Shown: piece by piece, positions 32,015-64,000 of the stretch
Layout of the letters: each line of letters opens with the position of its first letter
Numbering within the stretch: the stretch's first letter is position 1
Sequence record: NC_048173.1
Length of the DNA: 64,000 nt
Strand: one strand, 5' to 3'
Position numbers and translations under genes: made by a program
The notes under the pieces: generated by a model
What the model saw: the letters and a program-made list of their open reading frames with translations, nothing else
What the model was told of the DNA's origin: nothing
Database searches by the model: none

Positions 32015-32662
32015 ATGCAGAAACCTTTTGTAATTGCGATTGGTGGTCCCGACTATGGCGGGAAATCCACGTTTTGCAAGAAGTCCACAGAGCTGTTAGC
32101 GGCAGCTGGGTATAAAGCGGTTACTATCGGCTTTCCCAGCACCTCTGAATTAGGCTTAGCTGCCCGCGCGTCTATTCGTGCGAGTGAACCGCCTGAAGTA
32201 CAGGCCGCTAAACTGATTGCGGACTTCAAGCATCATTTGAATACGTTTGGGCAAAGCGATGCAGATGTGATTTTCCTTGACCATTTCGTCATCTCGACGA
32301 TTATGTATCAGGGCGAAGCAGGAAAAGCTGCAGTCTTTAATAGCGCGATACTGCGTCACAACTACGCCCCCTCGGTCTTCGTGGAAATCACGTGTGACTA
32401 CGAAACCATGCTAGCTCGTGCTAAGCAGCGTTTCGAAGAGAAGGGTGAAACGTGGGACGACGTGTTGACCGCGAAATATACCTCTACTCCGGAGAACTGG
32501 GACGCATTAGTGCAGCGAAGTGAATTCGCCCACCGGATTGTTACTGACTCAGGCGAACGTCGGGATTGGATTCGTTTAAATCCCCACTGGCAAACCAGCG
32601 ATGCAATGCAACTGGTTCTGAAGTTGGTCAATACGTTTGAGCACGAACGCCAGCCGGCTTAA
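32015..32662 (+). CDS. tmk: Thymidylate kinase-like dNMP kinase
   Basis: P-loop GGPDYGGKST; FLDHFVISTIMYQG corresponds to the DRY..S..AYQG motif. Confidence 0.75.
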   Translation: MQKPFVIAIGGPDYGGKSTFCKKSTELLAAAGYKAVTIGFPSTSELGLAARASIRASEPPEVQAAKLIADFKHHLNTFGQSDADVIFLDHFVISTIMYQGEAGKAAVFNSAILRHNYAPSVFVEITCDYETMLARAKQRFEEKGETWDDVLTAKYTSTPENWDALVQRSEFAHRIVTDSGERRDWIRLNPHWQTSDAMQLVLKLVNTFEHERQPA

Positions 32663-39835: not shown

Positions 39836-40369
39836 ATGAGCGATAAAATTGTACAGTTTACCCCACGCCCTGCGAACGGGCCAGTGGCAGACAAACCGGC
39901 AGTCGAGGGTGATGGGGTAGTGGCTGAGTTTAAAGACTACGACACCGGCCGTATCGAAGTGCCTCAGGCGGATGGGTCAACCAAGTCGATTATCTTCAGT
40001 CTCGATATGGTCGATTGGTGGATGGCGTTGTCTGAGCGTTTCATCGCCACTATGCCGGAAGGTCCGTACGGTCGAGCCTTCGTTGGGTTGAACAAACTCG
40101 AGCATGCCTGCACGGACGTCTTTACGAACCGTAAGCGTCATCTCGAAATGGAAATCACCCGCCAGCAGTTTGAGCAGTTTGTTCAGGCGGTGCCGTGTCA
40201 ACTAATGGAAACCGAACATCGTACCTGTCAGTTGAGTGTGGCGGAGTTTGCTATTAAGTATGCAGAAGACACAGTCTGCGCTAAAAACATTCCGGCTGAC
40301 CTCGTGTCTGCCATTTTCCTCTATCAAGTGGACGGCGAGCGTTTCCGTCTCCACTACGTTGAACAGTAA
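39836..40369 (+). CDS. Hypothetical protein
   Basis: 177 aa, abutting the upstream stop. Confidence 0.75.
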   Translation: MSDKIVQFTPRPANGPVADKPAVEGDGVVAEFKDYDTGRIEVPQADGSTKSIIFSLDMVDWWMALSERFIATMPEGPYGRAFVGLNKLEHACTDVFTNRKRHLEMEITRQQFEQFVQAVPCQLMETEHRTCQLSVAEFAIKYAEDTVCAKNIPADLVSAIFLYQVDGERFRLHYVEQ

Positions 40370-40378
40370 GGGTTTACA

Positions 40379-40639
40379 ATGTCAGAACTGAATACACAAC
40401 AAGCAGTCGACGGTATCAAGCAAGATATCATTAAGTCTTACGAAGGTCGCGCCACCTCCCTGACAGGTGACCCGGTTGATATTGGTAATCGCGGCATGAC
40501 CAATGTCCATATTCCGTGCGATGATCCGCCGTTCGATATGGACACCATTCCCGGTCTCGATCCTGAAGCGTTAGCGCCTAATGGTGTTGATGCGGCTGCT
40601 GATGATTCTGGCTGCGAGGGTGGCGCATGCAAGATTTAA
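40379..40639 (+). CDS. 86-aa protein ending in an NrdA-like C-terminal redox tail (CxxxxC)
   Basis: TAAGGG RBS; acidic Pro-rich linker then DDSGCEGGACKI*, compared with E. coli NrdA DDGCESGACKI*. Confidence 0.8.
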   Translation: MSELNTQQAVDGIKQDIIKSYEGRATSLTGDPVDIGNRGMTNVHIPCDDPPFDMDTIPGLDPEALAPNGVDAAADDSGCEGGACKI

Positions 40640-41127: not shown

Positions 41128-42027
41128 ATGGAAATAACGAAAATGACTCGTCAGACTTTTCAAGTACCCGTAGCGTACACCATCATCAAACCGACCGACG
41201 GTGTAATGGGTGACCTTATCCCTTCCATCAACAAATGGTCAGCGCAGAAAGCCGCACACCTTGCTGGCCCGGGTGTGAAACTGGAAGCACTGTACGAAAT
41301 CGCCATCAACAACGAAACTAAGCAGTGGCGTATCTCCGGTCGCGAAGCTATTAATGGTGATGTGTGGTTCTGGATGCCACCAACCGCGTTGGTGTTTGAA
41401 CACGAAGTTGTGGGACAAACTGCCTACCCGCGTGATGTGCCGCTGTTCACTATTGCTGAGTGCGTGGATAACGTAGTTGGCTGGTCTACCGCCCGTGGTA
41501 TACTGGAAAACGGCCGTTGGGCTACCCAGGTCACCAAGTTCTACGAAGAAGACGGCGAAGCGGCAACCGGTATTAGCAAAACCAAACGCCAGTACATCAT
41601 GGATGGTATCGGTGATGCGCTGGTTGTGATGGTGAACGTAATCAGTCTGGCCGGTGGTAATGCGAAAGCTATCGCGTTAGAAGTAGAGCGCCTGCCTGAG
41701 CGTCTGCTGCCGTATCCGTCTGGCGATGCCCACCGCCTGTTCCACAAAATGCGTCTGTATTCAACCCTGATGCACGAAGCGCTGTACATCGGCTGCGACC
41801 TGCTGGGCCAGCACGACGGTAAAGGCTATCAGCTAGACACCCGTCAGGACGACATTTATCGTGAGTTCGAGAAAAACATGCGTGAAGCCATCTGCTATGC
41901 GAATGCGCTGGCTAGTGCGTACGACATGACGCTGGAACAATGCTTCTCTCTGGCGTGGGACGAAATCAAAGACCGTAAAGGTTTCTTGAACGCCGACGGT
42001 ATCTTTATCAAAGAAGCTGACGCGTAA
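41128..42027 (+). CDS. MazG-like NTP pyrophosphohydrolase fused to an unknown N-terminal domain
   Basis: GWSTARGI, KFYEEDGEA, DGIGDALVV, LEQCFSLAWDEIKDRKG...GIFIKE. Confidence 0.8.
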   Translation: MEITKMTRQTFQVPVAYTIIKPTDGVMGDLIPSINKWSAQKAAHLAGPGVKLEALYEIAINNETKQWRISGREAINGDVWFWMPPTALVFEHEVVGQTAYPRDVPLFTIAECVDNVVGWSTARGILENGRWATQVTKFYEEDGEAATGISKTKRQYIMDGIGDALVVMVNVISLAGGNAKAIALEVERLPERLLPYPSGDAHRLFHKMRLYSTLMHEALYIGCDLLGQHDGKGYQLDTRQDDIYREFEKNMREAICYANALASAYDMTLEQCFSLAWDEIKDRKGFLNADGIFIKEADA

Positions 42028-42092
42028 AAACAACAATAACAACTGGGCGATGCGTTATGTGTCGCCCCTTTTATTTTTTTGAGGATTCAACG

Positions 42093-43505
42093 ATGAATAT
42101 CATCATGGAGTGGTATAACCTCCTGACTGAATCAATGAAAGCGTACCCTGCTCTACAAGCAGCTTTCTTAACGGTGATGTCTGGCGGTGTAATGGCAGCA
42201 GTGGGTTTTGCTTTAGTGCGTATGCCTCGCTCTGTCGCCACCTTCTTTCGTAATCAGTGCCTCACTTCTTTAGTCTTCAACACAGCCTCATCCGGTTGGT
42301 CGGACTACAACCAGATGCAATACGTCGCCTTCATTAAGTGGTTCTCTAAGAATCGCTGGTTCGGTTGGTCGCGTACCATTACTTTTGATTCAGACGGTCG
42401 CAAAGATGGCGACGGTGTCGGGCCGGGGTTAGGTCGTCACTTCTTCTTCCATAACTGGCGTCTGTTTATCTTCGCGATTCACGAGATGGACTCACAAGGC
42501 ACAAACAGTCAGAAATATAAAGTCAGTCTGTCATGTGTGGGTCGCTCGAAGAAACCAATTTACGCGGTGATGGAAGAGTTCATGGTCAAACCCGACCGTG
42601 AGAATCGCATCGGGGTTTACCGCAACGGTACGGATGGGTGGAACTGGGTCACCTATGCGAACAAGCGTTCTCTGCGCTCGGTGATTATGTCGCCGGAGCT
42701 GGAAGAGCAGCTGGTTGGTTCCATGACCAACTTCATTAACAACGAAGCATGGTACCGTGAACGCGGACTGAACTACAAGCTGACCTATCTGCTCTACGGC
42801 CCTCCGGGTACCGGTAAGAGTTCACTGGGGCGCGCGTTGGCTTCCCACTTTAACCGTGACCTGTATATCCTCAGCCTGTCGGAATCCTCAGACCTACTCA
42901 CCTTGTTGCAAAACGCCAAGGGTGGGATGGTGTTGATTGAAGATATCGATGGGTTCAGTGCAGCTCGTAAACGTTCTGCTAAGAAGAACCAGCTCGAGTC
43001 ACCGAAGTCGTCTGTGCAACCAATACAGTTCGATGGTAACGGGGAGCAGATTGCAGACTCGCAGTCGCCTTCTAAGAACCTCGAAGACATCATGGCTGAA
43101 TGGGGTGGGATGAACACGTCGGCTCTACTCAATGCGTTGGACGGCGTTGTAGGGTTGGATGACGTCATTATCCTCCTGTCAACTAATCATCCAGAGAAAC
43201 TCGACCCGGCACTGATTCGTGATGGTCGTGTGGACATCCGTGTGGAAGTTGGCTTCCTGCGTTCTGCTGAGATTCGTCGCTACATTAACTTGTTCTTCCC
43301 GGACTATGTAATCCCGGAAGGTATGGTCTTTGCCGACATGCCGGGTTGTACTGTGCAGCGCCACTTCATGGAGAACAAAAACAACCCTGAAGGTTTTGTC
43401 AATGCTTTGTTGGGTACAACCGCTGGCGGTTCAGTAACTACCAGTCCGATTCGTCCGGAGATGGCTTTCGCTTCTCCTAACTACAAAGAGGCGGTAAATG
43501 GTTAG
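42093..43505 (+). CDS. BCS1-like membrane-anchored AAA+ ATPase
   Basis: N-terminal TM; YLLYGPPGTGKSS, LIEDID, SALLNALDG, TNHPEKLDPALIRDGRVD. Confidence 0.85.
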   Translation: MNIIMEWYNLLTESMKAYPALQAAFLTVMSGGVMAAVGFALVRMPRSVATFFRNQCLTSLVFNTASSGWSDYNQMQYVAFIKWFSKNRWFGWSRTITFDSDGRKDGDGVGPGLGRHFFFHNWRLFIFAIHEMDSQGTNSQKYKVSLSCVGRSKKPIYAVMEEFMVKPDRENRIGVYRNGTDGWNWVTYANKRSLRSVIMSPELEEQLVGSMTNFINNEAWYRERGLNYKLTYLLYGPPGTGKSSLGRALASHFNRDLYILSLSESSDLLTLLQNAKGGMVLIEDIDGFSAARKRSAKKNQLESPKSSVQPIQFDGNGEQIADSQSPSKNLEDIMAEWGGMNTSALLNALDGVVGLDDVIILLSTNHPEKLDPALIRDGRVDIRVEVGFLRSAEIRRYINLFFPDYVIPEGMVFADMPGCTVQRHFMENKNNPEGFVNALLGTTAGGSVTTSPIRPEMAFASPNYKEAVNG

Positions 43506-44722: not shown

Positions 44723-45226
44723 ATGACAACGGTATTCGTTTGTAACGACTTTATCGTCGCTGACCGTGTGTTAACCCGGGGCGATGAAACCATACACACC
44801 GACTTTCAAAAGCTGCATGTGAACCGGGACAAAACTATTGCCATCGCAGTGGTGGGTAACGTGAACTTCCGTAACCATCACAAGACAGCGGCCGACCATT
44901 TCTTTAAGGTGGTCGAGCAGCGTTACGTCGGCATCCCTGAACCGGTACTCTCTAAGAACGATGTCTCGGTGTTGGGTGACCTGCAGCTCTATGTACTCAC
45001 AGCACTGGATGTGTTCGTCATTACCCGTGACCAGAATGTACAGTGGGTCGCAGACGGGCAGGTAGAAGGTGCCGGTACCGGCTTCCCATTAGCGTGCGCG
45101 GCGTACTCATTAGGCGCAAAGCCAGAACACATCATTCCTCTGACGGCGAAGATTGACCCCATGTCTTCGCGGACTTTCAACATCGTTTACCGTAACGAAC
45201 TCAAACGCATCGCACTGAGGAAGTAA
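44723..45226 (+). CDS. HslV/proteasome-beta-like Ntn peptidase
   Basis: N-terminal M-T-T, IVAD, a Lys near position 30, GAGTGFPLA..YSLGA, AKIDPMSS. Confidence 0.7.
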   Translation: MTTVFVCNDFIVADRVLTRGDETIHTDFQKLHVNRDKTIAIAVVGNVNFRNHHKTAADHFFKVVEQRYVGIPEPVLSKNDVSVLGDLQLYVLTALDVFVITRDQNVQWVADGQVEGAGTGFPLACAAYSLGAKPEHIIPLTAKIDPMSSRTFNIVYRNELKRIALRK

Positions 45227-52169: not shown

Positions 52170-52204
52170 AGGAGCCTCCGGGCTCCTCACCCTTTATTTT
52201 TTTT
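52170..52204 (+). terminator. Rho-independent terminator
   Basis: AGGAGCC-TCCG-GGCTCCT plus T tract. Confidence 0.75.
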
Positions 52205-52274
52205 GTCTCCCGCCTTGGGCCTAATCGTATGTATCCACGAGTTACTTTTTAACTTTGTCATAAGGCGCTTCAAG

Positions 52275-53075
52275 ATGAGGTCAGGCACATTAGAGAATTT
52301 AATCTCACTAATTAATTCCGCTAACTCAGCTGAAACACCCATCGCACTTGAAGATGTCGACGTTTCAGTACCGTATGCGGTTAACAAAGACGGTTGCAAC
52401 ACCGAGGTGGAAGTCACCATCAAACCGACTTATTTCCCGTTACGAGGGAAGCAGACTTTTCGCTACAATCGCCTCCCCATTGACACAGTGGTAAAAGGTG
52501 ATTTGGAGCTGTACATGGACCCGGAGATGCGGAACAGTTACGACATGATTCCGTACCTCAACCAACAGCTCAACATCGAACTGACTGAAAACGACGTCAT
52601 TAACGACCCGGTCACTGGACAGCAGCACGCCTTCCGTGCCGCCTCCACGTCCTACCAATGGAAAGACCTGGCGTTGGTGTTGTTAAAGCAAGCGACGCCG
52701 CTCGACGAGGTTATCCTCACGACCGCGCTTGACGGTTTAAAATACCCCGACACGCAAGACCCGAAAGGACAAGCGTCAGTTTACTCCTACGGGATTGACT
52801 GTTCGCGCATTGCACCGTTCCTTTGGGTTATGGATGCCGGGGTGGACTTTGACGATACGGCATTAGCCGCCGAGTTCAATAAAACCGTACCCGAACTTTG
52901 GGTCTCTGCCCCGGAAGCAGCTCCTTGGAACCTACGTGGCTCGAAATGTGTCTACGAAGGTTTAACCACGGGACTGCCGGGTAGCAACACTGTGTTCAAA
53001 CGCGTGGTGTCAATCGAACTGGGCCCGCTCTGCAGTAACTTCGCAGGCACCCTTAACTTGCACTACAATCCGTGA
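52275..53075 (+). CDS. Tail/baseplate paralog 1
   Basis: LINSAN, GCNTEV, FRYNRLPI, LNQQLNIELTENDV, STSYQWKD, LDGLKYP, YSYGIDC, LNLHYN. Confidence 0.8.
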   Translation: MRSGTLENLISLINSANSAETPIALEDVDVSVPYAVNKDGCNTEVEVTIKPTYFPLRGKQTFRYNRLPIDTVVKGDLELYMDPEMRNSYDMIPYLNQQLNIELTENDVINDPVTGQQHAFRAASTSYQWKDLALVLLKQATPLDEVILTTALDGLKYPDTQDPKGQASVYSYGIDCSRIAPFLWVMDAGVDFDDTALAAEFNKTVPELWVSAPEAAPWNLRGSKCVYEGLTTGLPGSNTVFKRVVSIELGPLCSNFAGTLNLHYNP

Positions 53076-53084
53076 GGTTAAAGG

Positions 53085-53927
53085 ATGGCTAAGTACACTA
53101 AAACCTCCAACGAGATGTTGCTCGATGCGATTAACATCGAAAACAACCTGCAGAATGATCCACTGACGTGGAATCAGATTGCGGCCGGCTTTCCCGAGAA
53201 GGTAACAACACCGGGTGCCGACCGAAACACTCGTTTACTTATCTACGGACTGAAGCAGGGTGGTTATAAAGGCACGGTCACGTTACAGTACGACCGTATC
53301 TCGCTGCCAGCTATCTTCCGTAATGTAACCCCGGTGGTAGTGACCAACCCTGTGCAGTTGCTGAGCCAGCTGCTGCCGCAACTCAACAAAGCGTACGGGC
53401 TGTCGTTAGACAAAGACGATATCCTTGAGCAGTCGGTTGCGGACTTAGGGGAAGACTTCCTGATTAACGTCCAGCTGCGACCTGGCTGTTTGGCGTGGGA
53501 AGGGGATTTTGAATTACGCTTTACCAAGTTCCGTCCGAAACTGAAAGACATCATTGCCGATGCTGTGCTGGATGTCATCGTAGCGCCGTTCCCTATTGGA
53601 ACGAAGCCCCGTGCCGAGTATGTAACCTACGGGTATGACTACTCCACGATGGGAGAAACGTTTAAAACGTGGGCCATTAATCGGACATTAACGCAGGACG
53701 ATATTGACGAACTGAACGAAACCGTGCAGGGGTTGAAACTGGTGAACAAAACCGGTGCCAATGCTTCTGCTGGGGAGATTGCGTTGTCGGGGGCGAAAGT
53801 CACCTCGATTAACAACGTGACAGACGGCAGTTTGTTTAACGTGCTGTACGAGAAGGCAATCGTGATTACACTGGCCACCACCAGTAACTACGAGGGTCAG
53901 CTTATCCTTCACTACTCTGCGCTTTAA
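53085..53927 (+). CDS. Tail/baseplate paralog 2
   Basis: INIENN, RNTRL, YDRISL, LNKAYGL, CLAWEG, YGYDY, LILHYS. Confidence 0.8.
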   Translation: MAKYTKTSNEMLLDAINIENNLQNDPLTWNQIAAGFPEKVTTPGADRNTRLLIYGLKQGGYKGTVTLQYDRISLPAIFRNVTPVVVTNPVQLLSQLLPQLNKAYGLSLDKDDILEQSVADLGEDFLINVQLRPGCLAWEGDFELRFTKFRPKLKDIIADAVLDVIVAPFPIGTKPRAEYVTYGYDYSTMGETFKTWAINRTLTQDDIDELNETVQGLKLVNKTGANASAGEIALSGAKVTSINNVTDGSLFNVLYEKAIVITLATTSNYEGQLILHYSAL

Positions 53928-53935
53928 GGATTGCT

Positions 53936-54781
53936 ATGCCTATCTTAAAACGTCCTGAGCAGTTAATTGTCGATCGTATTAACCTTGAGAATAAGACCGA
54001 CCTGAAGCTTACCGACGTAACCTTATTTACGCCGCGTGTGCCGACGACTGCTGAAGAGATTCAAAACGCTCAAGGTCGTAACTCGTTTGTGCGTATTGCC
54101 GCGACCCCGCTGGCTAATGCAACGGGTGCGACGTTTGTCTATTATAACCGTCTCGATTTCACGGCGATGTTTACCGATGAGACGGGGATTCAACCGTTGG
54201 TCGTGCCGGTCGACTTCGACACTGTCTTTACTGCATGGGATGTCGTGCCGTTCATTAACCAGTATTACGGGTTGATGCTCGAACCGAAAGACGTGCTGGA
54301 AGAAACCATCAACCGGGGTGACTGGACGGTGCAGCTGAAAGCGCATCCCGACTCCCTCGGCTGGGTGGGTGAAGTGCCGGTGCAGTTGGTGCGTGGTGAC
54401 GCGTTGGTACCGACGAACTTCACGGATGTGAAGATTGCGCCGTATGCCTATCCGTACTTCAACACGAAAGTCGGGCAAGGTGCTATTTACTCTTACCCGT
54501 GGCGTTTCGATAACTTTGCGGCGGAACTGCAGGGCATGGGAACCACCACCAATGAAACGCGTTTGGCACAGATTCTTAAGTCTGTGACTGCGGATAACTG
54601 GATGGTGTACCGTAGCCCGGTGGACTTCAACCTTAAAGAAGCCACGGTGGTTTATAACGGCAAGAACAGCCGTGACCTCCCAACGAACCCCTCGGTTGAC
54701 AACGTGATGGTTATCGAGTTGTCGCTGTATTGTCTCAACTTTGGCGGGCGCTTGTACCTGCATTACAATGACCCTGAATAA
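53936..54781 (+). CDS. Tail/baseplate paralog 3
   Basis: INLEN, RNSFV, YNRLDF, INQYYGL, DSLGWVG, LYLHYNDP. Confidence 0.8.
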   Translation: MPILKRPEQLIVDRINLENKTDLKLTDVTLFTPRVPTTAEEIQNAQGRNSFVRIAATPLANATGATFVYYNRLDFTAMFTDETGIQPLVVPVDFDTVFTAWDVVPFINQYYGLMLEPKDVLEETINRGDWTVQLKAHPDSLGWVGEVPVQLVRGDALVPTNFTDVKIAPYAYPYFNTKVGQGAIYSYPWRFDNFAAELQGMGTTTNETRLAQILKSVTADNWMVYRSPVDFNLKEATVVYNGKNSRDLPTNPSVDNVMVIELSLYCLNFGGRLYLHYNDPE

Positions 54782-54794
54782 GGAATAACGTTAA

Positions 54795-55715
54795 ATGAAA
54801 CCGTTAAACAAAACCTCCGATTTGCTGGTACTGGATCTCATCAACGAAGCGAACGTCGATGCCGACCTCGACCTGACCAAAGTCATCCTGCTACCCCCAG
54901 TCGATAACGATGAAGAAGGCGCTGACCGTAACAGTAAGCTGACTGTCAAAGCACGTAAGAACTCCGGCTTCATTAAGACGCAGGATGTGACTTATGACCG
55001 CCTGCAGGGTGAAGCGCTGTTCCGCAACATCGCTGCTTACCTCGATGTTAAACTGCCAACCTCTTCTACCGACCTGCTCGACCAGCTGAACAAACAGTAC
55101 GGTCTGAAGATTCAGGCAGAAGATATCGTTCCAGCCCCGATCGCGGCAGATACCAACCCGCCACTGACCGACCCGGAAGAGGATGCACCGCCTGCTGTGC
55201 AACACGTCATTACCTTTAAAGACGACTGCTACGCGTTCAAAGGTGCTATCAACGTCCTTATCGGCGAGCGTCCACAGGTGGGTGAACGCCTGTCTCTGGT
55301 TATCACCAAAACCAAACTGGACGGTCTGCAGTACCCTGATGGCAAAACAGACGAGAAAGGTCAGGCGTACATCTACTCTTACGGCACCGACTGCACCGCG
55401 ATTATGGGCTTCCTCAGCAAGCTGGCTGTAGGCACCCCGCTGGATGACACCGCGACTGCCACCGAGCTGAACAAAGTGTTCCCGGAAGAGTGGGTAGCGG
55501 TTGCTGGTACTGCTGACTACAACCTGACCGATGCTGATGTGATCTACGCGGGCTCCACTACCGAAACGGTACAAGACCCGAACGACCCACAGAACACCAT
55601 CACTCAGGATGTCCCGGGTGCAGACATGTCCTTCAACTCCATCGTGAAGCTGAAACTGTCTGACTCTGCGTGCGCGAACTTCCAGGGCGAGTTGTTCTTG
55701 CATTACAACGCATAA
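54795..55715 (+). CDS. Tail/baseplate paralog 4 (strong codon bias, likely abundant)
   Basis: INEAN, RNSKL, YDRLQG, LNKQYGL, LDGLQYP, LFLHYN. Confidence 0.8.
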   Translation: MKPLNKTSDLLVLDLINEANVDADLDLTKVILLPPVDNDEEGADRNSKLTVKARKNSGFIKTQDVTYDRLQGEALFRNIAAYLDVKLPTSSTDLLDQLNKQYGLKIQAEDIVPAPIAADTNPPLTDPEEDAPPAVQHVITFKDDCYAFKGAINVLIGERPQVGERLSLVITKTKLDGLQYPDGKTDEKGQAYIYSYGTDCTAIMGFLSKLAVGTPLDDTATATELNKVFPEEWVAVAGTADYNLTDADVIYAGSTTETVQDPNDPQNTITQDVPGADMSFNSIVKLKLSDSACANFQGELFLHYNA

Positions 55716-55722
55716 TGCTACC

Positions 55723-55762
55723 CCGGGGGAGATTTCTCCCCCGGTTCATCTGCTATTTTTGA
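55723..55762 (+). terminator. Terminator hairpin
   Basis: CCGGGGGA...TCCCCCGG followed by a T tract. Confidence 0.6.
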
Positions 55763-55778
55763 TTAGAAGGATGGTATT

Positions 55779-56780
55779 ATGCCAAGTCCATATGCCAAGT
55801 CTTCACAGCAACTGTTCTGGGACTTGGTAAACGCATCAAACCCGCAGTTGAAGATTCCTTTGTCGGACGCCAACTGTGTTATTTACGGCTATCCGCAAGC
55901 AGTCACCTCAAATGCGGCATCGGGTTATCGCAATACCAAGATTCGTTTGTATGCGAAAGTGGGGATGGGGTATAAAGGCGAGGTTTCTGTCTACTATAAC
56001 CGCCTGAATATTGCCAGCTTCTTTGTGGGCATCACTCCGACTGTTACGCATTACACTGCAAACACCCCAGCACTTGTAATGGATGTGTTTAATGCCACGT
56101 ACGGCTTGCAGTTGACATACGCCAACCGGTCCTGGACTGACTCCACGCCCGCCTGGACGTTAGGGATGACAATTCCGGACATCATGATGTATAGCTCATC
56201 GTACCAAGCCGGGGCAGCCAGTAGTGACAACACCAAACGCTACACGACGGCAAACGAATCGCTGTGTTGGGTGGGGGGTACTAACCTTGACATCAGTCGT
56301 ATTCGCGGCAACCCTGACTACGGTACGTTGATTACGAAGCCTGAGATTGTGACCATGCGTAAAGTGCCGGTACAAACGCCTAACACGTACAATACCGCTT
56401 TACTGACGTGGGGTTACGATTTCACTGATAAGCAAACCACCATCGCTAACTTCCTATCCTCGCCAACGAACCGCACTTATCAGTTGGCGTTGGCGCAGAT
56501 GCTGGCGGATGTGACGGGTCTTCCTTTTGCATGGGGGAACGGTGGTGCTGCCGGGGCTTTAGATTTGCAAGGATTTACGCAGCAGCAGGCGCAGCTGGCC
56601 CTCGGAACGCGTTATCACACCAATACCGATGATTATAACCGCTGCTTAATGTTGTACCGCGACACGACGCCATTAGGTGCTGGTTGGTCTACAGACGGCT
56701 GGCAGGGAATGAACGGTGACCAAGATGACGTCAACAATACCGTGTTCCGTCACATGGTCTTTATGCACTACAACGCTTAA
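55779..56780 (+). CDS. Tail/baseplate paralog 5
   Basis: VNASN, RNTKI, YNRLNI, FNATYGL, WGYDF, FMHYN. Confidence 0.8.
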   Translation: MPSPYAKSSQQLFWDLVNASNPQLKIPLSDANCVIYGYPQAVTSNAASGYRNTKIRLYAKVGMGYKGEVSVYYNRLNIASFFVGITPTVTHYTANTPALVMDVFNATYGLQLTYANRSWTDSTPAWTLGMTIPDIMMYSSSYQAGAASSDNTKRYTTANESLCWVGGTNLDISRIRGNPDYGTLITKPEIVTMRKVPVQTPNTYNTALLTWGYDFTDKQTTIANFLSSPTNRTYQLALAQMLADVTGLPFAWGNGGAAGALDLQGFTQQQAQLALGTRYHTNTDDYNRCLMLYRDTTPLGAGWSTDGWQGMNGDQDDVNNTVFRHMVFMHYNA

Positions 56781-56792
56781 CCGGAGTAAGAA

Positions 56793-57683
56793 ATGTCACG
56801 CAATCTATTTTATTACACCGGTTTAGAGCGAGTGATGCGGGCGATAACACTGGCCAACGGGTTAACTAACCTGACGACATCAAACTGCGTTATCTCCAAA
56901 CCGGCTCCGATTTCAGGCAGTTGGAAAGAGAACACCACCACCAAGAACACGGTTGTGAAAATTTCTCAGACTATCCCGGCTGTTACGTACAACGGTAAAA
57001 ACTGGGTCACGTATGACCGTGTTCCTATAGCGTCGATGTTGAACCAGTTACCTAACGCCGCCACCCTCAAAGTCGACCATCCTGCGAATGTTTATGCGCT
57101 GCTCCGCGCGATTAACCGTCGTTGGGGTATCGGGTTGGAAGAAGCGGACGTTATCAACGACCCTATCACGCTGGATGGCGACGGTAAAGCTACCGTCACG
57201 ATGATGATACACCCAGACAGTTATTTGTACACTGGGAGTTTCACCTTCAATATCGTGCCGGGTGATGCCAACTTGGACGAGAACGTCACGGTGACCACGT
57301 TGTCGGGTATGAACTACCCTGACGGTAACACAGCCGCGCTGGGCGGCAGTAAAGGCTATGCCCAACCGTACAGCTACAGCTTCGACTTCACGTTGAAAGA
57401 AGCCGAACTGCGCGCGCTGAAAGTGGGGACAGACCTTGGGACACTGGCGGACATTCTGACGTACATCACGAAAACCACGTGGACGAATGGCGCTTCGGAT
57501 GCGGATAACGCGTACACCGTGCTCGGCTCGGAAATCCTGTACAATGGTTTGAACTCATCCAGTTACCCGACCAGTTCCGCCTTTAAGTATCTGGTGATTG
57601 TGAAGATGGGTCCACGGAGCAAACTGCAAGGGAACATGTACCTGCAGTTTAATGATAAGGACGACCCGAACTCCCCTAACTAA
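56793..57683 (+). CDS. Tail/baseplate paralog 6
   Basis: KNTVV, YDRVPI, INRRWGI, DSYLYTG, MYLQFNDKDDP. Confidence 0.8.
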   Translation: MSRNLFYYTGLERVMRAITLANGLTNLTTSNCVISKPAPISGSWKENTTTKNTVVKISQTIPAVTYNGKNWVTYDRVPIASMLNQLPNAATLKVDHPANVYALLRAINRRWGIGLEEADVINDPITLDGDGKATVTMMIHPDSYLYTGSFTFNIVPGDANLDENVTVTTLSGMNYPDGNTAALGGSKGYAQPYSYSFDFTLKEAELRALKVGTDLGTLADILTYITKTTWTNGASDADNAYTVLGSEILYNGLNSSSYPTSSAFKYLVIVKMGPRSKLQGNMYLQFNDKDDPNSPN

Positions 57684-57694
57684 CGGAGGCTGCT

Positions 57695-58513
57695 ATGGCT
57701 TTGTATAGCCAGTCTCAGCAACAGTACATGGTGGATGCCATTAACGCCCGTAACCCGGGCGCTATCAGTTTACTGACCCTGAAGAATTGCTTCATCGGTA
57801 AACCGAAGGCTATCACCCCAAAACTACCGGGCGACCCCAACACGGAAATCGTGGTACGTGGCCGGCCGGGAAGTGGGTACATCGGTTCGCAAACGTTCCA
57901 ATATACTCGCTTGTCGCTGAGTGATTTGTTTAAGAACTTCACCCCTGTTATCACCATGCCGGGCATCGGCGTCACTCAACAGGCGGTAGCCAACATTAAC
58001 GGGCGTTACGGGTTGAACCTTGTGCCTGAAGATGTGGTGTCGTATTACCTGTACCGCAACTCGTTAAGCCCGCTGCGGGTGTATGGCACGAGCCTGCAAT
58101 ACGTGGGTAGCGTCAACATCAAATACGTACCGGGCCCGTACAGTCTGGAAGAACTGGTGGTCAACAACATCTTAAATGAGATGAACCATCCGATTGATCC
58201 AGACGACGGGAAACTCTGCGGTACCATGCTGGCCTACGGCGTGGACTTTACTGACGAATACCAGTTACTCGGTTCCTTCGCAACAGGTGCTATGGGTACG
58301 GGGTCGAACTTCACCTCGGGCCGTAGTGATTCGTTGGTTGACATGATGGAAGCCCGCGGCCTCCCACGCTGGGACTTCACCGGTGCGCGAGCGCAGGTCA
58401 AAACCACAGCCAACGAACCGCGTGCGAATAAAAAGTTCGACCGTGTTCTCGTGATTACGTTAGTCAACGACCCTCACGTGGCTGGCGATTGGTTACTCCA
58501 CTACAATATTTAG
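57695..58513 (+). CDS. Tail/baseplate paralog 7
   Basis: INARN, PNTEI, YTRLSL, INGRYGL, YGVDF, WLLHYN. Confidence 0.8.
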   Translation: MALYSQSQQQYMVDAINARNPGAISLLTLKNCFIGKPKAITPKLPGDPNTEIVVRGRPGSGYIGSQTFQYTRLSLSDLFKNFTPVITMPGIGVTQQAVANINGRYGLNLVPEDVVSYYLYRNSLSPLRVYGTSLQYVGSVNIKYVPGPYSLEELVVNNILNEMNHPIDPDDGKLCGTMLAYGVDFTDEYQLLGSFATGAMGTGSNFTSGRSDSLVDMMEARGLPRWDFTGARAQVKTTANEPRANKKFDRVLVITLVNDPHVAGDWLLHYNI

Positions 58514-58525
58514 TAGGAAACGAAA

Positions 58526-59404
58526 ATGGCAATTTATCAACCATCGAAAGATGTGCTGTTGGCCGCCGTTAATTCGCAGAACTCCCTGACGATTAAACTG
58601 ACCGACATTACCTACAGCGCACCCAAGGACATTCGTGGAACAGACCAAGAGTCTACCACCCAGCGTAACACGTTGGTGAAAATCACCGCAACCCCAACCG
58701 GTTCGTGGACAGGCAAAAAGAACCTGTTTTATAACCGCTTGAAAGTTGAAGATATCCAGACTCTTATTGGCGACACGCTGCAAGTGGGTAGCGTTACCCA
58801 TCTGCACGATGCGCTAATCGGTCTGAATAACCGTTACGGGTTTGCGTTTGAAGCTGTAGATGTGGAAAACACAGAACTGGAATGGGAACCGGACGGTCTG
58901 AGTGGTTTTCTGGATATCACTGCCAAAACTGACTCACTGGGTTGGATTGGGAGTGCGCGCTTTAAACTGGCGAAAGGTGATGAGTCGCTGCAGTCTGCAG
59001 TTACAACCACCACCCTGAACGGTCTGAAGTATCCGAACGGCGACATGGGTTCTGTTGCACAGACTGCGGTTCTGGCAGAAATCTATTCTTATCCGTTTGA
59101 TCACACCGCGAACCGTGATGCGCTGTTGGTATACCAGCCGGGTGTATTGGCTGCAGGCGCTGACCTGAACAACCTCGTTACACTGCTAAATGGTATCACG
59201 GGCACAACGTGGGTAGCGACGAATGCCGCCTCGTGGGGTCTGCTGGGTGCAGAAATCACCTATAACGGACTCAACAAAACCGAGTTCCCAACTAACACCA
59301 AGTACAAGTACGCAATGGCTATCAAGCTGCCTGCGACGACCACGAACATTAAGGGCACCCTGTACGTCCAGTATAGCGACCCTGACGACCCGAACGAGGT
59401 GTAA
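58526..59404 (+). CDS. Tail/baseplate paralog 8
   Basis: VNSQN, RNTLV, YNRLKV, LNNRYGF, DSLGWIG, LYVQYSDPDDP. Confidence 0.8.
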   Translation: MAIYQPSKDVLLAAVNSQNSLTIKLTDITYSAPKDIRGTDQESTTQRNTLVKITATPTGSWTGKKNLFYNRLKVEDIQTLIGDTLQVGSVTHLHDALIGLNNRYGFAFEAVDVENTELEWEPDGLSGFLDITAKTDSLGWIGSARFKLAKGDESLQSAVTTTTLNGLKYPNGDMGSVAQTAVLAEIYSYPFDHTANRDALLVYQPGVLAAGADLNNLVTLLNGITGTTWVATNAASWGLLGAEITYNGLNKTEFPTNTKYKYAMAIKLPATTTNIKGTLYVQYSDPDDPNEV

Positions 59405-59407
59405 TCT

Positions 59408-60235
59408 ATGTTGTCCTACAAAAAGCCCTCTAACGAGCTGGTATACGACCTGATTAACCTCGCCAACCCTGACCTGCCGGTACCGGTTTCTGCTGCTAAC
59501 GTTATCATCGAGAAAATCACCGATGTGGCGGTGAACGCGGCATCAAACCAACGTAACACATCGGCCCGTTTGCGCGGCGTTCAGGGTGCAGGGTATACTG
59601 ACTCGGTAACGCTGTATTACGACCGCATTAACTTAGCAACCATTATACCGGTGTATAACCAGTCGAAGGCAGGGTTCACGACCTTTACGGCGACAAACGT
59701 ACACGGGGCGCTGGCAGCTATCGAAGAAGCCTTCGGTGTTAATTTCGGCACGATGGATGTGGTGAACACTGGTTTAGCGGGTGCAAACTCGCCAGACTAT
59801 TCTTCGCAGTTTACGTTAAGTGCCCAGCCTAACTCCCCAGCATATCGGGGTTCGCAGGGTGTGCGTTATTACCGCGGTAAGCCGGTTCTTGATACGTCCA
59901 TTACCAAAGATGTATTGAGTGCGCTGACACATCCTATCGATGAAACTCTCAACAAGAAGTGCGTTGACTTGTTGACGTATGGTATCGACTTCACGGCGTA
60001 CAAAAACCTGTTGAACGTTACAGCGGCGGGTCTACCTAACTGGGCAGGTCTGCGTACCGTGCTAGATCAGCTGGGTATTCCGCAGTACGCGGGTCCCCTG
60101 AACTCGAACACTGTGCAGGATGTTGCGACCTCCACCATGCCAACGGCGAATAAGAACTTCGACCGTGTTGTGGTGCAGACCGGTATCGACGATGTCGGTG
60201 TGAAAGGCGTGGCGTACTACCACTACAACAGTTAA
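59408..60235 (+). CDS. Tail/baseplate paralog 9
   Basis: INLAN, RNTSA, YDRINL, NSPAYRG, YGIDF, YYHYN. Confidence 0.8.
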   Translation: MLSYKKPSNELVYDLINLANPDLPVPVSAANVIIEKITDVAVNAASNQRNTSARLRGVQGAGYTDSVTLYYDRINLATIIPVYNQSKAGFTTFTATNVHGALAAIEEAFGVNFGTMDVVNTGLAGANSPDYSSQFTLSAQPNSPAYRGSQGVRYYRGKPVLDTSITKDVLSALTHPIDETLNKKCVDLLTYGIDFTAYKNLLNVTAAGLPNWAGLRTVLDQLGIPQYAGPLNSNTVQDVATSTMPTANKNFDRVVVQTGIDDVGVKGVAYYHYNS

Positions 60236-60239
60236 ACCG

Positions 60240-60266
60240 TGGCCCTTCGGGGCCATTTCTTTTTTT
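60240..60266 (+). terminator. Rho-independent terminator
   Basis: TGGCCC-TTCG-GGGCCA plus T tract. Confidence 0.75.
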
Positions 60267-60276
60267 GGGAGGCGTT

Positions 60277-61659
60277 ATGGGCCTTTATGGTAAGGCGGCG
60301 TTGGATATCCTCGGCGCACTTATTAACCGAGACAACCCGAGCTTAAAAACTCAGTTGAACTCGAGTAATATTGTGTTGCTCGGAGGCCCTTACACCACCG
60401 GACTAGGAACAAGTGGGCGAAATACTCGGGTCGTGATTAACGGCAAAACCGGGTCGGGCGTGACAGGGAAAAAAGAATTCTTTTATGACCGACTAAACCT
60501 CGGGGATTTGTTTAAGAACTTGACCGTTGTGTTTCAAGCCGGCAATAAAGTTGTTACTGTCGGAGATTTGCTGCCCGCATTAAATGAGCAATACGGAATT
60601 TATTTAACTGCGGACGATGTCACGAATGCTGGAACGAACTTAGGCTTCGGGTATACGCCGACCGCGGTTACTTTTAATATCGCCACCACCAGTCTGGTTT
60701 ACCGTGGAACGCTGTCTGCAACATGGACACGTAAAGCGGCGGGTGTGTATCCTGACTCGGGACCTGGGTCGAAGACCATGTTGATAGGCGATATGTCCGC
60801 GGGCTATTTCGGAACAGTGTCGCAAGACGAGATGTTTAACTCTTCAGAGGTGATGCAAGAGATGTTTGCAGGCAGTCTACCTGCTGGCGTGTCTATTGTC
60901 GTCGACCCCGCGATGTTGTGGATAAAGTTTGCCATCGACAATGAATTTGTTTTCTTCCCGACGAAAAATATTGCCTCTAACATCAGTTGGAACACGTTGG
61001 ATGCGGCAGGCGCGGTAATCGGTAATCGTAACGTGCCATTGCTCCTTGAGAAAAACGGTATGCAGTTGTTCCTTCCTCGGCTACCGAAGATGGGGAATGC
61101 TGATCCAATTGAGCCGGTTCGTGGTGATCCGACGTCTGATGCCGCCCGACTGTTCAATAAGGTTCACAACAGCTCGTACGGTACTGCGGTATGGGACATT
61201 ATCTCTACCTTAGACCAGTCCGCTTTCTGGTGGAAAAACTCCCGCGTTGGGTTCGAAACCTCGGCATTTGTAGCCGGCGCTAACCAAGCGGGTATTAACA
61301 GCACCGCTAAAACCGGCAATAGCAGCTGGCGCCCGTTGCTAAAACTCGTAGACGGTAAGGATTATGTTCTGCCCATGCGAAGCGTGCAGGGTGTGGCGGT
61401 CATGCCTCTCCAGCGTATCGATTTCTTTATTGATAGCACCCGTGACCCGAACATGCTGCTACCTATGGAGAACGTTGAAGGTAACCTGTACCTGAAATTC
61501 CCAGCACCGGTTAGTTACGCGCCTGTTTACGACACGATTGCGGCGGTGCCAAACCTGTCCGGGACTAAACCTATCCAATCTATCGTTGCGAGCTTCACCG
61601 CGACGTACGATACCCGTTTCAATTTATCAACCGCCAACGCAGAGCTTGACGGCTTTTAA
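60277..61659 (+). CDS. Hybrid tail protein: paralog-family N-domain plus a GYFG/WxKF C-domain
   Basis: GGAGG RBS; RNTRV, YDRLNL, LNEQYGI; then GPGSKTMLIGDMSAGYFG, WIKF. Confidence 0.8.
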   Translation: MGLYGKAALDILGALINRDNPSLKTQLNSSNIVLLGGPYTTGLGTSGRNTRVVINGKTGSGVTGKKEFFYDRLNLGDLFKNLTVVFQAGNKVVTVGDLLPALNEQYGIYLTADDVTNAGTNLGFGYTPTAVTFNIATTSLVYRGTLSATWTRKAAGVYPDSGPGSKTMLIGDMSAGYFGTVSQDEMFNSSEVMQEMFAGSLPAGVSIVVDPAMLWIKFAIDNEFVFFPTKNIASNISWNTLDAAGAVIGNRNVPLLLEKNGMQLFLPRLPKMGNADPIEPVRGDPTSDAARLFNKVHNSSYGTAVWDIISTLDQSAFWWKNSRVGFETSAFVAGANQAGINSTAKTGNSSWRPLLKLVDGKDYVLPMRSVQGVAVMPLQRIDFFIDSTRDPNMLLPMENVEGNLYLKFPAPVSYAPVYDTIAAVPNLSGTKPIQSIVASFTATYDTRFNLSTANAELDGF

Positions 61660-61670
61660 AGGATACCGTT

Positions 61671-62687
61671 ATGGCATTAAAACTTTCATGGGCGAATCCT
61701 AACAAGGCCGCCACAGCGATTCGTATTTATCGCAAAGATACCGATTTCGATAGCAGCACCTTGCCTGCGCCGTTGGCCTCAATCGGTCCAACTGAAACTG
61801 CTTACATCGACACTACTGCAGTCGAAGGTAAAACGTATTACTACATCGTGGGCACGGTTAGCGCTGTCGATGAAGTCTTTACTGCCAGCCAGAAAATCAC
61901 AGTTACTGATAACCGCGGTGTGGGGCCGGGTATTCTGGTAGGGGGTGACAATCTGTTAGGCTACTTCGGTCAAATCCCGACTGAAGACTTTGTTAACAGT
62001 AGCGTACTGTTGGCGGCGGCTGCCAGTGTCACCGGTATCCCTAACGCCCTCCAGACACCGGCATGGCATAAGTTCATTCGTAACGGGAAAATCCTTTATC
62101 TGCCCGACCAGATTATGGGTAGTACGGATTGGCGCTATTTGTATCAAGCCGGGTTCGTGTTCGGCGTCGATGCTAATGGCCCTCCCGGCGCAGTGCTCAC
62201 CGGTGTAACCCCCACGAATCAGTTGCGTACGTTTGTCTTCAAAGGTAAAACGTATAAGATTCGTCTGCTGCGTGGGTGGAGTGATGGTCCGGAAACAGAT
62301 ATCACCGCTTACAACGGCGCGGCCGCTAACCATGACAACATCGCGAATACCAAGGACAATGAGTTCAACGATTTAGTGTATGCGTTAAACATGTATACGC
62401 CAAACAAGCAGCGCACGCCAAACTTCATTAACTTAGCGTGGGAAAAGTGGGTGGGTCAGCCTACCACAAACTGGAGTGATACTGCGAGTTTGAACGCATT
62501 GATTGCGGCATATCGCATCACCTGTCAAGAACGTTGGCCTAATGGTAACGTGCTGTCTCGTGGGCAACGTGAGGTGACTTGGGGACCGAATGCCTCGCCC
62601 CACACTCGCGCGCACGTCTCCAATGCTGCGGCCGCAGCCTACACCCAGTCGATGTACTGGTTGCCAGTTTTAGAACTTGTTGATTAA
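61671..62687 (+). CDS. Tail protein with an FN3-like N-domain and GYFG/WxKF C-domain
   Basis: LKLSWAN..IRIYR..YIDTTAVEGKTYYYIV; GPGILVGGDNLLGYFG, WHKF. Confidence 0.8.
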   Translation: MALKLSWANPNKAATAIRIYRKDTDFDSSTLPAPLASIGPTETAYIDTTAVEGKTYYYIVGTVSAVDEVFTASQKITVTDNRGVGPGILVGGDNLLGYFGQIPTEDFVNSSVLLAAAASVTGIPNALQTPAWHKFIRNGKILYLPDQIMGSTDWRYLYQAGFVFGVDANGPPGAVLTGVTPTNQLRTFVFKGKTYKIRLLRGWSDGPETDITAYNGAAANHDNIANTKDNEFNDLVYALNMYTPNKQRTPNFINLAWEKWVGQPTTNWSDTASLNALIAAYRITCQERWPNGNVLSRGQREVTWGPNASPHTRAHVSNAAAAAYTQSMYWLPVLELVD

Positions 62688-62696
62688 GGGATCAAA

Positions 62697-63584
62697 ATGG
62701 GCATTAAATTAAATTGGGTAGACCAGTCTGTCCAGAACCTCGACGCGATTGAGATTTATCGTAGTACCTCGCCTATCGATTCAGACAACCCCGGCGCACC
62801 GATTGCAACCTTACCGGGCACCGCGACGTCTTACGACGACACGACAGTAAAAAATAAAAACGTTTATTACTATCGCGTTGTCGCGAAGAAAGGAACCGAC
62901 CGTAGCTGGGGACCAAACCAGTTCACTGGGTACTTTGCTGAAACCGGTCCGGGACGTCCCACACCATTGCGTGGCGATTGGAAAGCTGCGCTAATGGACA
63001 TTCTTGCCCCTGCAGATTTCATCACGAATGCTGCGTTGCGTGCGAAGGTGCCAGCTTTAGCCGCATTAACTGCAGGAGGAGAGCCCTCAGGCTGGTTTAA
63101 GATGTTTTGGAAAGGCAAAGTTTTCTTTGTGCCGAACGCAAACCTGATTACGGCGTCGTGGGGACAGGTGTACAATGCTGGGTTAGTGTACGGGGTTGAC
63201 GGTGTTGGTGACCGCCCGGCCGGTATTGGCGCGGGCACGGTGAATCAAAAAGTCACTGTGGACATCGGTGGCCGTCGTTACTTGATTCGTTGCCCGAAAC
63301 TTTCTTCGCTGCCCGAAACGTCTTTCGCCACCACACAGGCTGATACCCTCGGCTCCGAGTGGCGCGATACGATGGCACGTATGGTGCGAGAAACGGTAGA
63401 CCCACAACCGGGAAGTCTGACGCGACTGTATGATAATACGTCACTTCCCAACTTCTTCGGTTCCCACTACACGTCGGCTGGAAACATTATCATCCTGACG
63501 GGGACAAAACCTGAAAGCTACGCATCCATTGCAGGCGCAACTGCCGCCAGCGTTGGACTGGTATTAGAACTCATCATGCCGTAA
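62697..63584 (+). CDS. Tail protein with an FN3-like N-domain, paralog of the upstream gene
   Basis: IKLNWVD..IEIYR..YDDTTVKNKNVYYYRV; GPGRPTPLRGDW, WFKM. Confidence 0.8.
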   Translation: MGIKLNWVDQSVQNLDAIEIYRSTSPIDSDNPGAPIATLPGTATSYDDTTVKNKNVYYYRVVAKKGTDRSWGPNQFTGYFAETGPGRPTPLRGDWKAALMDILAPADFITNAALRAKVPALAALTAGGEPSGWFKMFWKGKVFFVPNANLITASWGQVYNAGLVYGVDGVGDRPAGIGAGTVNQKVTVDIGGRRYLIRCPKLSSLPETSFATTQADTLGSEWRDTMARMVRETVDPQPGSLTRLYDNTSLPNFFGSHYTSAGNIIILTGTKPESYASIAGATAASVGLVLELIMP

Positions 63585-63593
63585 GGAGGCCGT

Positions 63594-64000
63594 ATGGGAT
63601 TATACACACGTGGTTCGCTGGACTTATTGGGACAGCTTATCAAACGAGATAACCCCGGCTTCAAAGGCGAAATAAATAAGAGTACCGTGCTTGTATTAGG
63701 CGGTCCTTATACCTCTGGATTAGGCACAAGCGGGCGCAACACCCGCATTGTGTTGAATGGTAAGACAGGGTCTGGGGTGGTCGGTAAAAAAGAGTTTTTC
63801 TACGACCGCCTCAATATCGCCTCGATGTTCAACGGGATTACCGTTGTCTTCAAAGCCAATGGGCAATCAGCGACCGTGGCTGACTTGTTACCCGCCCTTA
63901 ACGAACAATACGGTTTAGGTTTAACAGCGGAAGATATCACCAACGGCTCTACAAAGCTCGGTACCGGCTATTCGCCGACACCGGTGACTCTGACTATCTC
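63594..64000 (+). CDS. 5' part of a second hybrid tail protein, close paralog of 60277 (truncated by the window edge)
   Basis: GGAGG RBS; MGLYTRGSLDLLGQLIKRDNP...LGGPYTSGLGTSGRNTRIVLNGKTGSGVVGKKEFFYDRLN; not in the ORF track. Confidence 0.85.
   Translation, partial: MGLYTRGSLDLLGQLIKRDNPGFKGEINKSTVLVLGGPYTSGLGTSGRNTRIVLNGKTGSGVVGKKEFFYDRLNIASMFNGITVVFKANGQSATVADLLPALNEQYGLGLTAEDITNGSTKLGTGYSPTPVTLTI

Follow-up and report, generated by a model that had tools for sequence, protein, structure and literature searches.

The window analysed here is a stretch of 64,000 nucleotides that corresponds, at 100% identity, to positions 62001-126000 of the record of Erwinia phage Derbicus (NC_048173.1/MK514282.1, 223,950 bp, genus Derbicusvirus). 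The host of this phage is Erwinia amylovora, and its genome is that of a jumbo phage with phiKZ-type split multisubunit RNA polymerase genes. Phage EarlPhillipIV was found to be near-identical to the Derbicus window. The gene under study, gp116 (YP_009821160), is annotated as a hypothetical protein and lies among genes of nucleotide metabolism. A first-pass annotation, made from the nucleotide sequence, had placed a thyA, a dTMP kinase and a MazG-like gene nearby, and all three were confirmed. The features of the locus are collected in Table 1.

Table 1. Features of the gp116 locus (positions in the window, start to stop codon for genes)
Feature	Position	Strand	Remarks
Thymidylate kinase, gp101	32015..32662 (record 94015-94662)	+	From annotation
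Thymidylate synthase, gp110, 342 aa	37164..38192	+	Upstream anchor of the nucleotide-metabolism cluster
SD-like AAGGG	40368..40372	+	6 nt 5' of the gp116 ATG; overlaps the gp115 TAA; read from the sequence
gp116, putative stand-alone NrdA-tail protein, 86 aa	40379..40639	+	ATG start, TAA stop (stop included)
gp116 residues 1-56, variable N-terminal part	40379..40546	+	Phage alignment
gp116 residues 57-71, conserved upstream motif IPGLDPEALAPNGVD	40547..40591	+	Phage alignment
gp116 residues 72-86, acidic linker and putative redox tail	40592..40636	+	Matches E. coli NrdA 747-761
gp116 Cys79	40613-40615	+	CX4C spacing with Cys84
gp116 Cys84	40628-40630	+	Followed by Lys-Ile at the free C-terminus
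gp117, 155 aa	40627..41094	+	phrog_839; Arn.3-like in the CR5 annotation; ATG inside the tail codons
MazG-like nucleotide pyrophosphohydrolase, gp118	41128..42027	+	Usual downstream neighbour of the tail gene in phiKZ-like lineages

The gp116 frame, whose product has the C-terminal end DDSGCEGGACKI, agreed with its first description, both by the reading of the ORF and by the annotation of the record. A ribosome-binding site of its own had also been ascribed to it, and the SD-like element of Table 1 was located ahead of the start codon; the gp115 stop and the gp116 start are separated by 9 nt. On the other side, gp116 and gp117 overlap by 13 nt and are thus probably translationally coupled. The gene gp117 adjoins the tail gene only in Derbicusvirus. 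Its family, phrog_839, is listed with 'unknown function', and only a sub-threshold match to Ntox17 was obtained for it with Pfam.

The protein has a calculated pI of 4.05. Its C-terminal half had been described as acidic, rich in Pro and Asp and probably disordered. The composition bears this out, as residues 44-86 comprise 10 D/E and 6 P against a single K/R. An AlphaFold2 model based on a five-sequence alignment gave a mean pLDDT of 50.6, with a low-confidence helix at residues 4-19 and coil elsewhere, which is consistent with intrinsic disorder of the protein. No Pfam family was detected in gp116 at E ≤ 0.1. The tail motif occurs only once in the Derbicus genome.

The identity of the tail was approached with a profile built from the C-terminal 36 residues in nine phage homologues, which was compared with the PDB (matches reported at E ≤ 10). 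Fourteen distinct sequences were matched, and every one of them (14/14) was the C-terminus of a class Ia NrdA. All 14 alignments ran from profile position 22-24 through the last position of the profile and the last residue of the chain. In the case of E. coli NrdA, the aligned stretch was residues 747-761, PSIQDDGCESGACKI, with an E-value of about 1e-3. This end-to-end alignment upholds the initial observation that gp116 ends like class Ia NrdA, Cys pair included. Among the 14 matches was 1qfn_B, an isolated 25-residue R1 peptide in a structure bound to glutaredoxin 1. Since all the PDB matches of the profile were NrdA ends aligned to the last residue, the likeness of the gp116 tail to NrdA, judged by these alignments, is not a matter of chance. 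The profile was needed for this link: a single-sequence phmmer search of the PDB with gp116 gave no match, and a word-indexed search with the single gp116 sequence retrieved 5 proteins only.

When bacterial genomes (one per species) were scanned with the same profile, 14 loci were confirmed, their sources including Lonsdalea, Morganella, Moritella and Neptuniibacter. Three of the 14 were tested with Pfam and their ORFs were NrdA (L015, L027), with NrdB directly downstream (L027). The other 11, read as C-terminal peptides only, showed the same NrdA end. The last 8 residues of gp116 are identical to those of NrdA from Lonsdalea and Morganella. Full-length NrdA proteins with the same tail are also encoded by phages in IMG/VR (L051, 790 aa; L052, 752 aa). 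The tails of most class I enzymes carry CXXC, and CX4C, with E. coli as the typical case, is found in a minority (PMC9669993), so that the spacing in gp116 points to a copy of the host-type tail specifically. For E. amylovora itself we infer the tail type of NrdA from three other Enterobacterales families. A flexible tail with a Cys pair at the extreme C-terminus, as in class Ia NrdA, is present in gp116. Taken as sequence comparison, these results strongly support that gp116 faithfully reproduces, on a chain of its own, the redox tail of class Ia NrdA.

Several phage genera have homologues that retain the terminal Cys pair. By tblastn, the C-terminal 30-36 residues were detected in Cronobacter phage CR5, Phobos and pEa_SNUABM_38 (Derbicusvirus), in pEa_SNUABM_30 and pEa_SNUABM_1 (filed under Alexandravirus) and in phB78. 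They were likewise found in phiEaH2 and Asesino (Erskinevirus) with their close relative Stratton, in Machina, Huxley and Parshik, in SPN3US, SEGD1, the SPFM and SPLA phages and SPAsTU (Seoulvirus), and in the E. coli phages EC001 and Lh1B and Proteus phage 7. The stand-alone tail gene is thus a conserved feature of jumbo phages that infect Enterobacterales, Machinavirus being among their genera. More tail-bearing jumbo contigs, of 210-266 kb, were present in IMG/VR. An exhaustive HMMER search over 1.84 billion representatives added five small proteins (54-92 aa) ending in the tail and, besides those, one unrelated repeat protein; no longer protein with the whole tail module was found among these representatives. 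In PHROGs, gp116 matched 24014 (E 1e-44), 14561 (E 2e-10) and 38753 (E 1.6e-7). These are the existing bins of the family, all of 'unknown function', split by the variable N-termini and with no record of the link to NrdA.

The phage tail proteins are 40-120 aa long; from genus to genus the N-termini show no relationship, and an alignment is possible for the final ~30 residues only. Members of the family, gp116 included, consist of a short ORF with the upstream motif and CX4C-Lys-Ile/Leu in its last ~30 residues, and the stop codon directly follows the tail in every member compared. Of the last 30 columns, 10 were invariant in 14 phage sequences from at least five genera (P58, G59, D61, G69, D71, C79, G82, A83, C84 and K85 in gp116 numbering). 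The positions that do vary within the tail are the residue after the first Cys, the Gly/Ser that follows and the terminal Ile/Leu, and the same positions vary in real NrdA tails. At the codon level, each invariant column is encoded by 2-4 synonymous codons in the 14 sequences. The codon-pair differences amounted to 1005 synonymous versus 821 non-synonymous over the last 30 codons, and to 307 versus 143 over the last 9. As synonymous codons are free at the invariant columns, it is the peptide and not the DNA that is under selection.

The conserved upstream motif is located 8-22 residues before the first Cys. No counterpart was found in NrdA or in NrdB, and its derivation from a segment of either protein was rejected on this ground. 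The motif is possibly a docking element for the peptide. A variant of 40-48 aa from a 261 kb contig (IMGVR_UViG_3300033997_000092, L053:4968-5090) has the acidic lead-in and the exact tail without the upstream motif, and hence the motif may not be indispensable. Four tandem repeats closely resembling gp116 residues 57-71 were observed in P0009, an unrelated, membrane-like protein of 267 aa; they may point to a short linear motif that is used more widely, or be a chance product of an acidic composition rich in Pro. Further towards the N-terminus, a second short motif, SLTGDP in gp116 (residues 27-32, window 40457-40474), is kept only in Derbicusvirus-type members and in several metagenomic relatives (P0002-P0008). 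It is absent from the SPN3US, Erskinevirus and Alexandravirus versions of the tail protein.

The tail gene was always found among nucleotide-metabolism genes, 3' of thymidylate synthase or, in Alexandravirus, of dCMP deaminase. The genes that separate thyA from the tail gene, two or three in number, look syntenic by size but are not homologous across genera. A conserved phage partner next door was rejected, because the upstream neighbours are non-homologous between genera and without conserved Cys. The phage pEa_SNUABM_30 (L004:6007-6150, L054-L059), an Alexandravirus, is not of the phiKZ type: it encodes a sigma factor together with replication genes resembling those of T4, and Alexandravirus has a topoisomerase II and a clamp loader as well. 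Because the tail gene is common to phiKZ-like lineages and to the unrelated Alexandravirus, it must have moved between jumbo phages that share hosts. Its sharing across unrelated lineages suggests the transfer of a useful accessory gene.

Several observations were made on the surroundings of gp116. In the thymidylate synthase gp110, 341 residues align to about 275 PHROG profile positions, with ~65 extra residues inserted, and the thymidylate synthases of relatives are equally long (339-353 aa). The product of gp119 (window 42057-43505) is an AAA ATPase with the BCS1 N-terminal domain PF08740 (38 bits, above the cut-off), an architecture of the mitochondrial-chaperone type and not a usual one for phages. 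A few kb 3' of the cluster lies gp123 (window 44723-45226), which encodes a peptidase of the HslV family; Asesino also has such a gene, its gp1. From window position 52203 to 64000 and beyond, ~15 consecutive same-strand genes of similar size (about 270-510 aa) are all annotated as virion structural (gp136-gp150). This run resembles a tandem paralogue array, and the same array is present in SPN3US and Asesino.

In one uncultivated jumbo phage of 236,909 bp (IMGVR_UViG_3300011862_000001, L042:4038-5105), the tail module forms the C-terminus of a 355-aa ORF. The body of this ORF is homologous to Machina gp244 (36% identity, E 4e-60), phiEaH2 gp151 and SPN3US gp232. The gene that normally lies between the gp232-family gene and the tail gene is absent there, and the fusion is in frame. 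Such an arrangement could be expected if the gp116 C-terminus had converged on that of NrdA and had an unrelated function, as a metal- or cluster-binding peptide, as the precursor of a modified peptide or as a handle for a phage protein like those of the gp232 family; a radical-SAM gene pair conserved elsewhere in these genomes would suit the same reading. These radical-SAM genes are, however, separated from gp116 by over 90 kb. Cys residues are not conserved in the gp232 family, and a Derbicus homologue of it was not detected, gp113, at the corresponding position, being the only protein compared (hhalign probability 0.1%). For these two reasons the L042 fusion is regarded as a curiosity; it is not general, and it shows only the need for a free C-terminus. 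Convergence is in addition difficult to reconcile with a match of 11-13 residues that includes the acidic lead-in and the exact end, NrdA being the sole class of protein matched. An unrelated function is accordingly very unlikely.

The occurrence of RNR was evaluated in Derbicus, SPN3US, pEa_SNUABM_30 and Asesino, each representing a different genus; all four complete genomes were read whole, piece by piece. Neither a ribonucleotide reductase nor a thioredoxin or glutaredoxin is annotated in any of them. Using Morganella NrdA and NrdB and two phage NrdA proteins as tblastn queries, which cover class I only, no match reached E 0.01 in any of the four genomes, and nothing like the catalytic body of either subunit was among the matches. 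The absence of class II and III enzymes rests on annotation and on Pfam applied to large ORFs. The only high-identity tblastn match in each genome was the tail itself (60-92% over 12-20 residues, E 0.02-1.8). With full-length Morganella NrdA against the Derbicus genome, it consisted of the 13-residue gp116 tail with 92% identity. The other matches were short, of low identity and with E-values of 0.07 or above; in SPN3US, three of these low-identity matches had lower E-values than the tail. No RNR domain was detected with Pfam in the eight largest unknown proteins of Derbicus, and no redoxin active-site motif in Derbicus ORFs of 50 aa or more. A phage-encoded redoxin partner, neither annotated nor recognisable by its active-site motif, was consequently rejected.

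The first-pass annotation had pointed out that no RNR catalytic domain is fused or adjacent to gp116. This was borne out, and the rest of the genome, for which a check for nrdA and nrdB had been proposed, contains none by annotation, class I tblastn or Pfam. Host or phage NrdA had been named as the possible partner; the phage option has to be dropped, as the phage lacks RNR, and any RNR partner must be that of the host. From the absence of RNR in these genomes it also follows that the tail is neither a split-off piece of nrdA nor the partner of a phage RNR. A frameshifted or split nrdA remnant, which had already been doubted because the upstream ORFs showed no NrdA motifs, was rejected: no sequence similar to NrdA or NrdB was found upstream of gp116 or elsewhere in the genome. 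A recent capture from host DNA was rejected as well, since no nucleotide similarity to E. coli nrdA was detected, the blastn matches in that check being chance ones in ftsK.

RNR subunits are encoded by phiKZ (PMC12571901), which makes it plausible that the enzyme was lost in the course of evolution and the tail kept or acquired. This, together with the full NrdA proteins that carry the same tail in other phages and the position of the gene where nucleotide-metabolism genes cluster, would agree with gp116 being a non-functional relic, that is, the 3' end of an otherwise deleted phage nrdA kept by chance as a short ORF. Yet the invariant columns were retained across at least five genera with synonymous codons free, while the flanking genes diverged beyond recognition. 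The stop codon is always placed directly after the tail, the gene is also present in an unrelated phage lineage, and neither the sequence upstream of gp116 nor the upstream motif derives from NrdA. Given the codon-level conservation, the relic reading is disfavoured and appears extremely unlikely.

The re-reduction of class I RNR by its own C-terminal tail is textbook enzymology. In each turnover an active-site disulfide is formed and is reduced by the Cys pair of the tail, which is then reduced by thioredoxin or glutaredoxin (PMC5704485; PMC9669993). Electron transfer between subunits from RNR C-termini has been documented (PMC5704485). Against this background, the preferred reading is that gp116 would stand in for the host NrdA tail in trans, being reduced by redoxins and feeding the active site of host NrdA; this is considered close to an even prospect. 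In a first step, Cys79 and Cys84 would in all likelihood be reduced by host thioredoxin or glutaredoxin in the manner of the native tail. This step is based on the tail peptide of 1qfn_B, which is a glutaredoxin ligand and whose determinants are kept in gp116; as an isolated R1 peptide on Grx1, it indicates that a free tail peptide is competent as a redoxin ligand.

The same structure could be taken to mean that the tail captures host thioredoxin or glutaredoxin as a substrate mimic or handle for a purpose other than RNR. Reducing power might be diverted in this way, or redoxin-dependent functions of the host or of competitor phages blocked, and Derbicus has no redoxin of its own. A reduced dithiol peptide without an oxidising partner would nevertheless neither consume nor hold a redoxin, a further surface for binding is not conserved in the variable N-terminus, and the constant nucleotide-metabolism setting points to dNTP supply. 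Such a decoy or adaptor is thus quite unlikely.

In the second step of the proposed trans action on host NrdA, the reduced tail would enter the active site in trans and reduce the disulfide formed on turnover, the upstream motif perhaps holding the peptide in place. The step is suggested by the need of a dithiol peptide for an oxidising partner and by a sequence that evolved for the NrdA active site. In the third, gp116 would provide extra reducing 'arms' for the host enzyme or replace damaged ones. The host enzyme would then supply dNDPs for the 224-kb RNR-less genome, beside the phage ThyA, dTMP kinase and MazG-like enzymes.

Asesino, in which the tail gene is gp255, is informative on the demand for such a supply. 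This phage forms a phage nucleus, its thymidylate kinase is cytoplasmic and host DNA is not noticeably degraded during infection (PMC11724907). As Asesino is without RNR and host DNA stays largely intact, a de novo supply of dNDPs via the host enzyme would be needed. For gp116, a role as a diffusible electron shuttle from host thioredoxin or glutaredoxin to host NrdA, which would lift a re-reduction bottleneck and allow RNR-less jumbo phages to replicate genomes of 220-260 kb while host DNA is undegraded, is possible, somewhat short of an even chance. The benefit of a diffusible copy is questionable, since host NrdA has its own tethered tail at high local concentration. The proposed shuttle is further weakened by one case in which activity could not be recovered in trans by expressing the C-terminal domain of a class II enzyme separately (PMC5704485), and by the upstream motif, for which neither NrdA nor NrdB has an equivalent.

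Alternatively, gp116 could inhibit host RNR, with the extra motif giving the affinity needed for this. Using the motif as its anchor, the mimic tail would fill the tail site of NrdA or form a dead-end mixed disulfide, so that regeneration of the active site is blocked and host dNTP synthesis is shut down in a Sml1-like manner. The identity and conservation of the tail apply equally to this case, and eukaryotes are known to have small disordered proteins acting as a block to R1 regeneration, Sml1 being an example (PMC6382339). Such a block would, however, starve a genome of 224-260 kb, given that the four genomes lack RNR and that host DNA remains largely intact with Asesino. The strict conservation of both Cys residues is also a better fit to a full redox cycle than to plain occupancy. 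Inhibition is therefore rated as unlikely. The RNR-less genomes of 224-260 kb and the largely intact host DNA of Asesino indirectly favour support of host RNR over its inhibition, and this argues for a positive direction of the effect.

No description of a stand-alone class I tail gene, or of the function of this phage tail family, was found in the literature. An RNR redox tail encoded apart from its enzyme, by a virus that lacks that enzyme, was thus not found described. If action in trans on host NrdA holds true, it would reveal the way in which dNTPs are secured by jumbo phages that lack RNR, among them the well-studied SPN3US and the nucleus-forming Asesino. It would also serve as a natural experiment on whether class Ia RNR is limited in vivo by the step that depends on the tail, and represent a new type of host takeover, by mimicry of a disordered catalytic appendage as opposed to a folded domain or DNA. 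If inhibition were true, gp116 would be the first counterpart of the Sml1-type regulators in a bacterial virus, and a starting point in the search for peptides that bind enterobacterial RNR. Either way, a widespread 'hypothetical protein' family distributed over three PHROGs receives a specific, checkable annotation.

Compared with known systems, gp116 is closest to the tail of class Ia NrdA (E. coli R1 ~737-761, with Cys754 and Cys759). The last 11-13 residues, the acidic lead-in, the CX4C spacing, the Gly-Ala before the second Cys and the Lys-Ile/Leu at the free end are shared, as are the disordered character and the pattern of variable and invariant positions. In contrast to NrdA, gp116 has no catalytic domain, is encoded by its own gene (40-120 aa products in RNR-less phages) and carries the extra upstream motif. 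Its assignment as a class Ia NrdA was rejected, as no Pfam family was matched and the catalytic domain, a ten-stranded alpha/beta barrel (PF02867) accompanied by the all-alpha domain and ATP-cone, is absent; Morganella NrdA, used as positive control, scored 462 bits on PF02867. An assignment as thioredoxin, glutaredoxin or NrdH redoxin was rejected too, since the Cys spacing is CX4C and not CxxC and neither a Pfam match nor a fold was obtained.

The split class II NrdJa/NrdJb enzymes had been put forward as a precedent. The analogy holds in that the electron-delivering C-terminus of NrdJb from Pseudomonas aeruginosa is on a separate polypeptide (PMC5704485; PMC9669993). It is loose in other respects, because NrdJb is a folded domain of 150-220 aa with six conserved Cys and zinc, does not resemble the tails of class I enzymes in sequence and has its gene next to that of the catalytic partner, within one genome (PMC5704485), whereas the partner of gp116 would be the enzyme of another organism. 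No adjacent catalytic RNR gene of this kind was present in the four complete genomes. With 86 aa, two conserved Cys and no confident fold, gp116 was rejected as a NrdJb-type domain.

With the Sml1-type yeast regulators (also Hug1, Dif1, Spd1; PMC6382339; PMC4245953), gp116 shares the character of a small disordered protein and the putative connection to the regeneration step of the large subunit. It differs from them in being viral and in its Cys pair, the Sml1-type proteins being cellular inhibitors without one, and there is no sequence relationship. Membership in a Sml1-like sequence family was rejected, as no Pfam family was found at E ≤ 0.1 and the PDB matches were NrdA tails only. GrcA/YfiD is known as a 'spare part' of pyruvate formate-lyase, a small stand-alone protein that duplicates the C-terminal module of a large radical enzyme and can serve in trans. 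It is a folded glycyl-radical domain, encoded by the same organism as its partner. It pertains to a different enzyme family and has no homology to gp116; what both have in common is the concept only.
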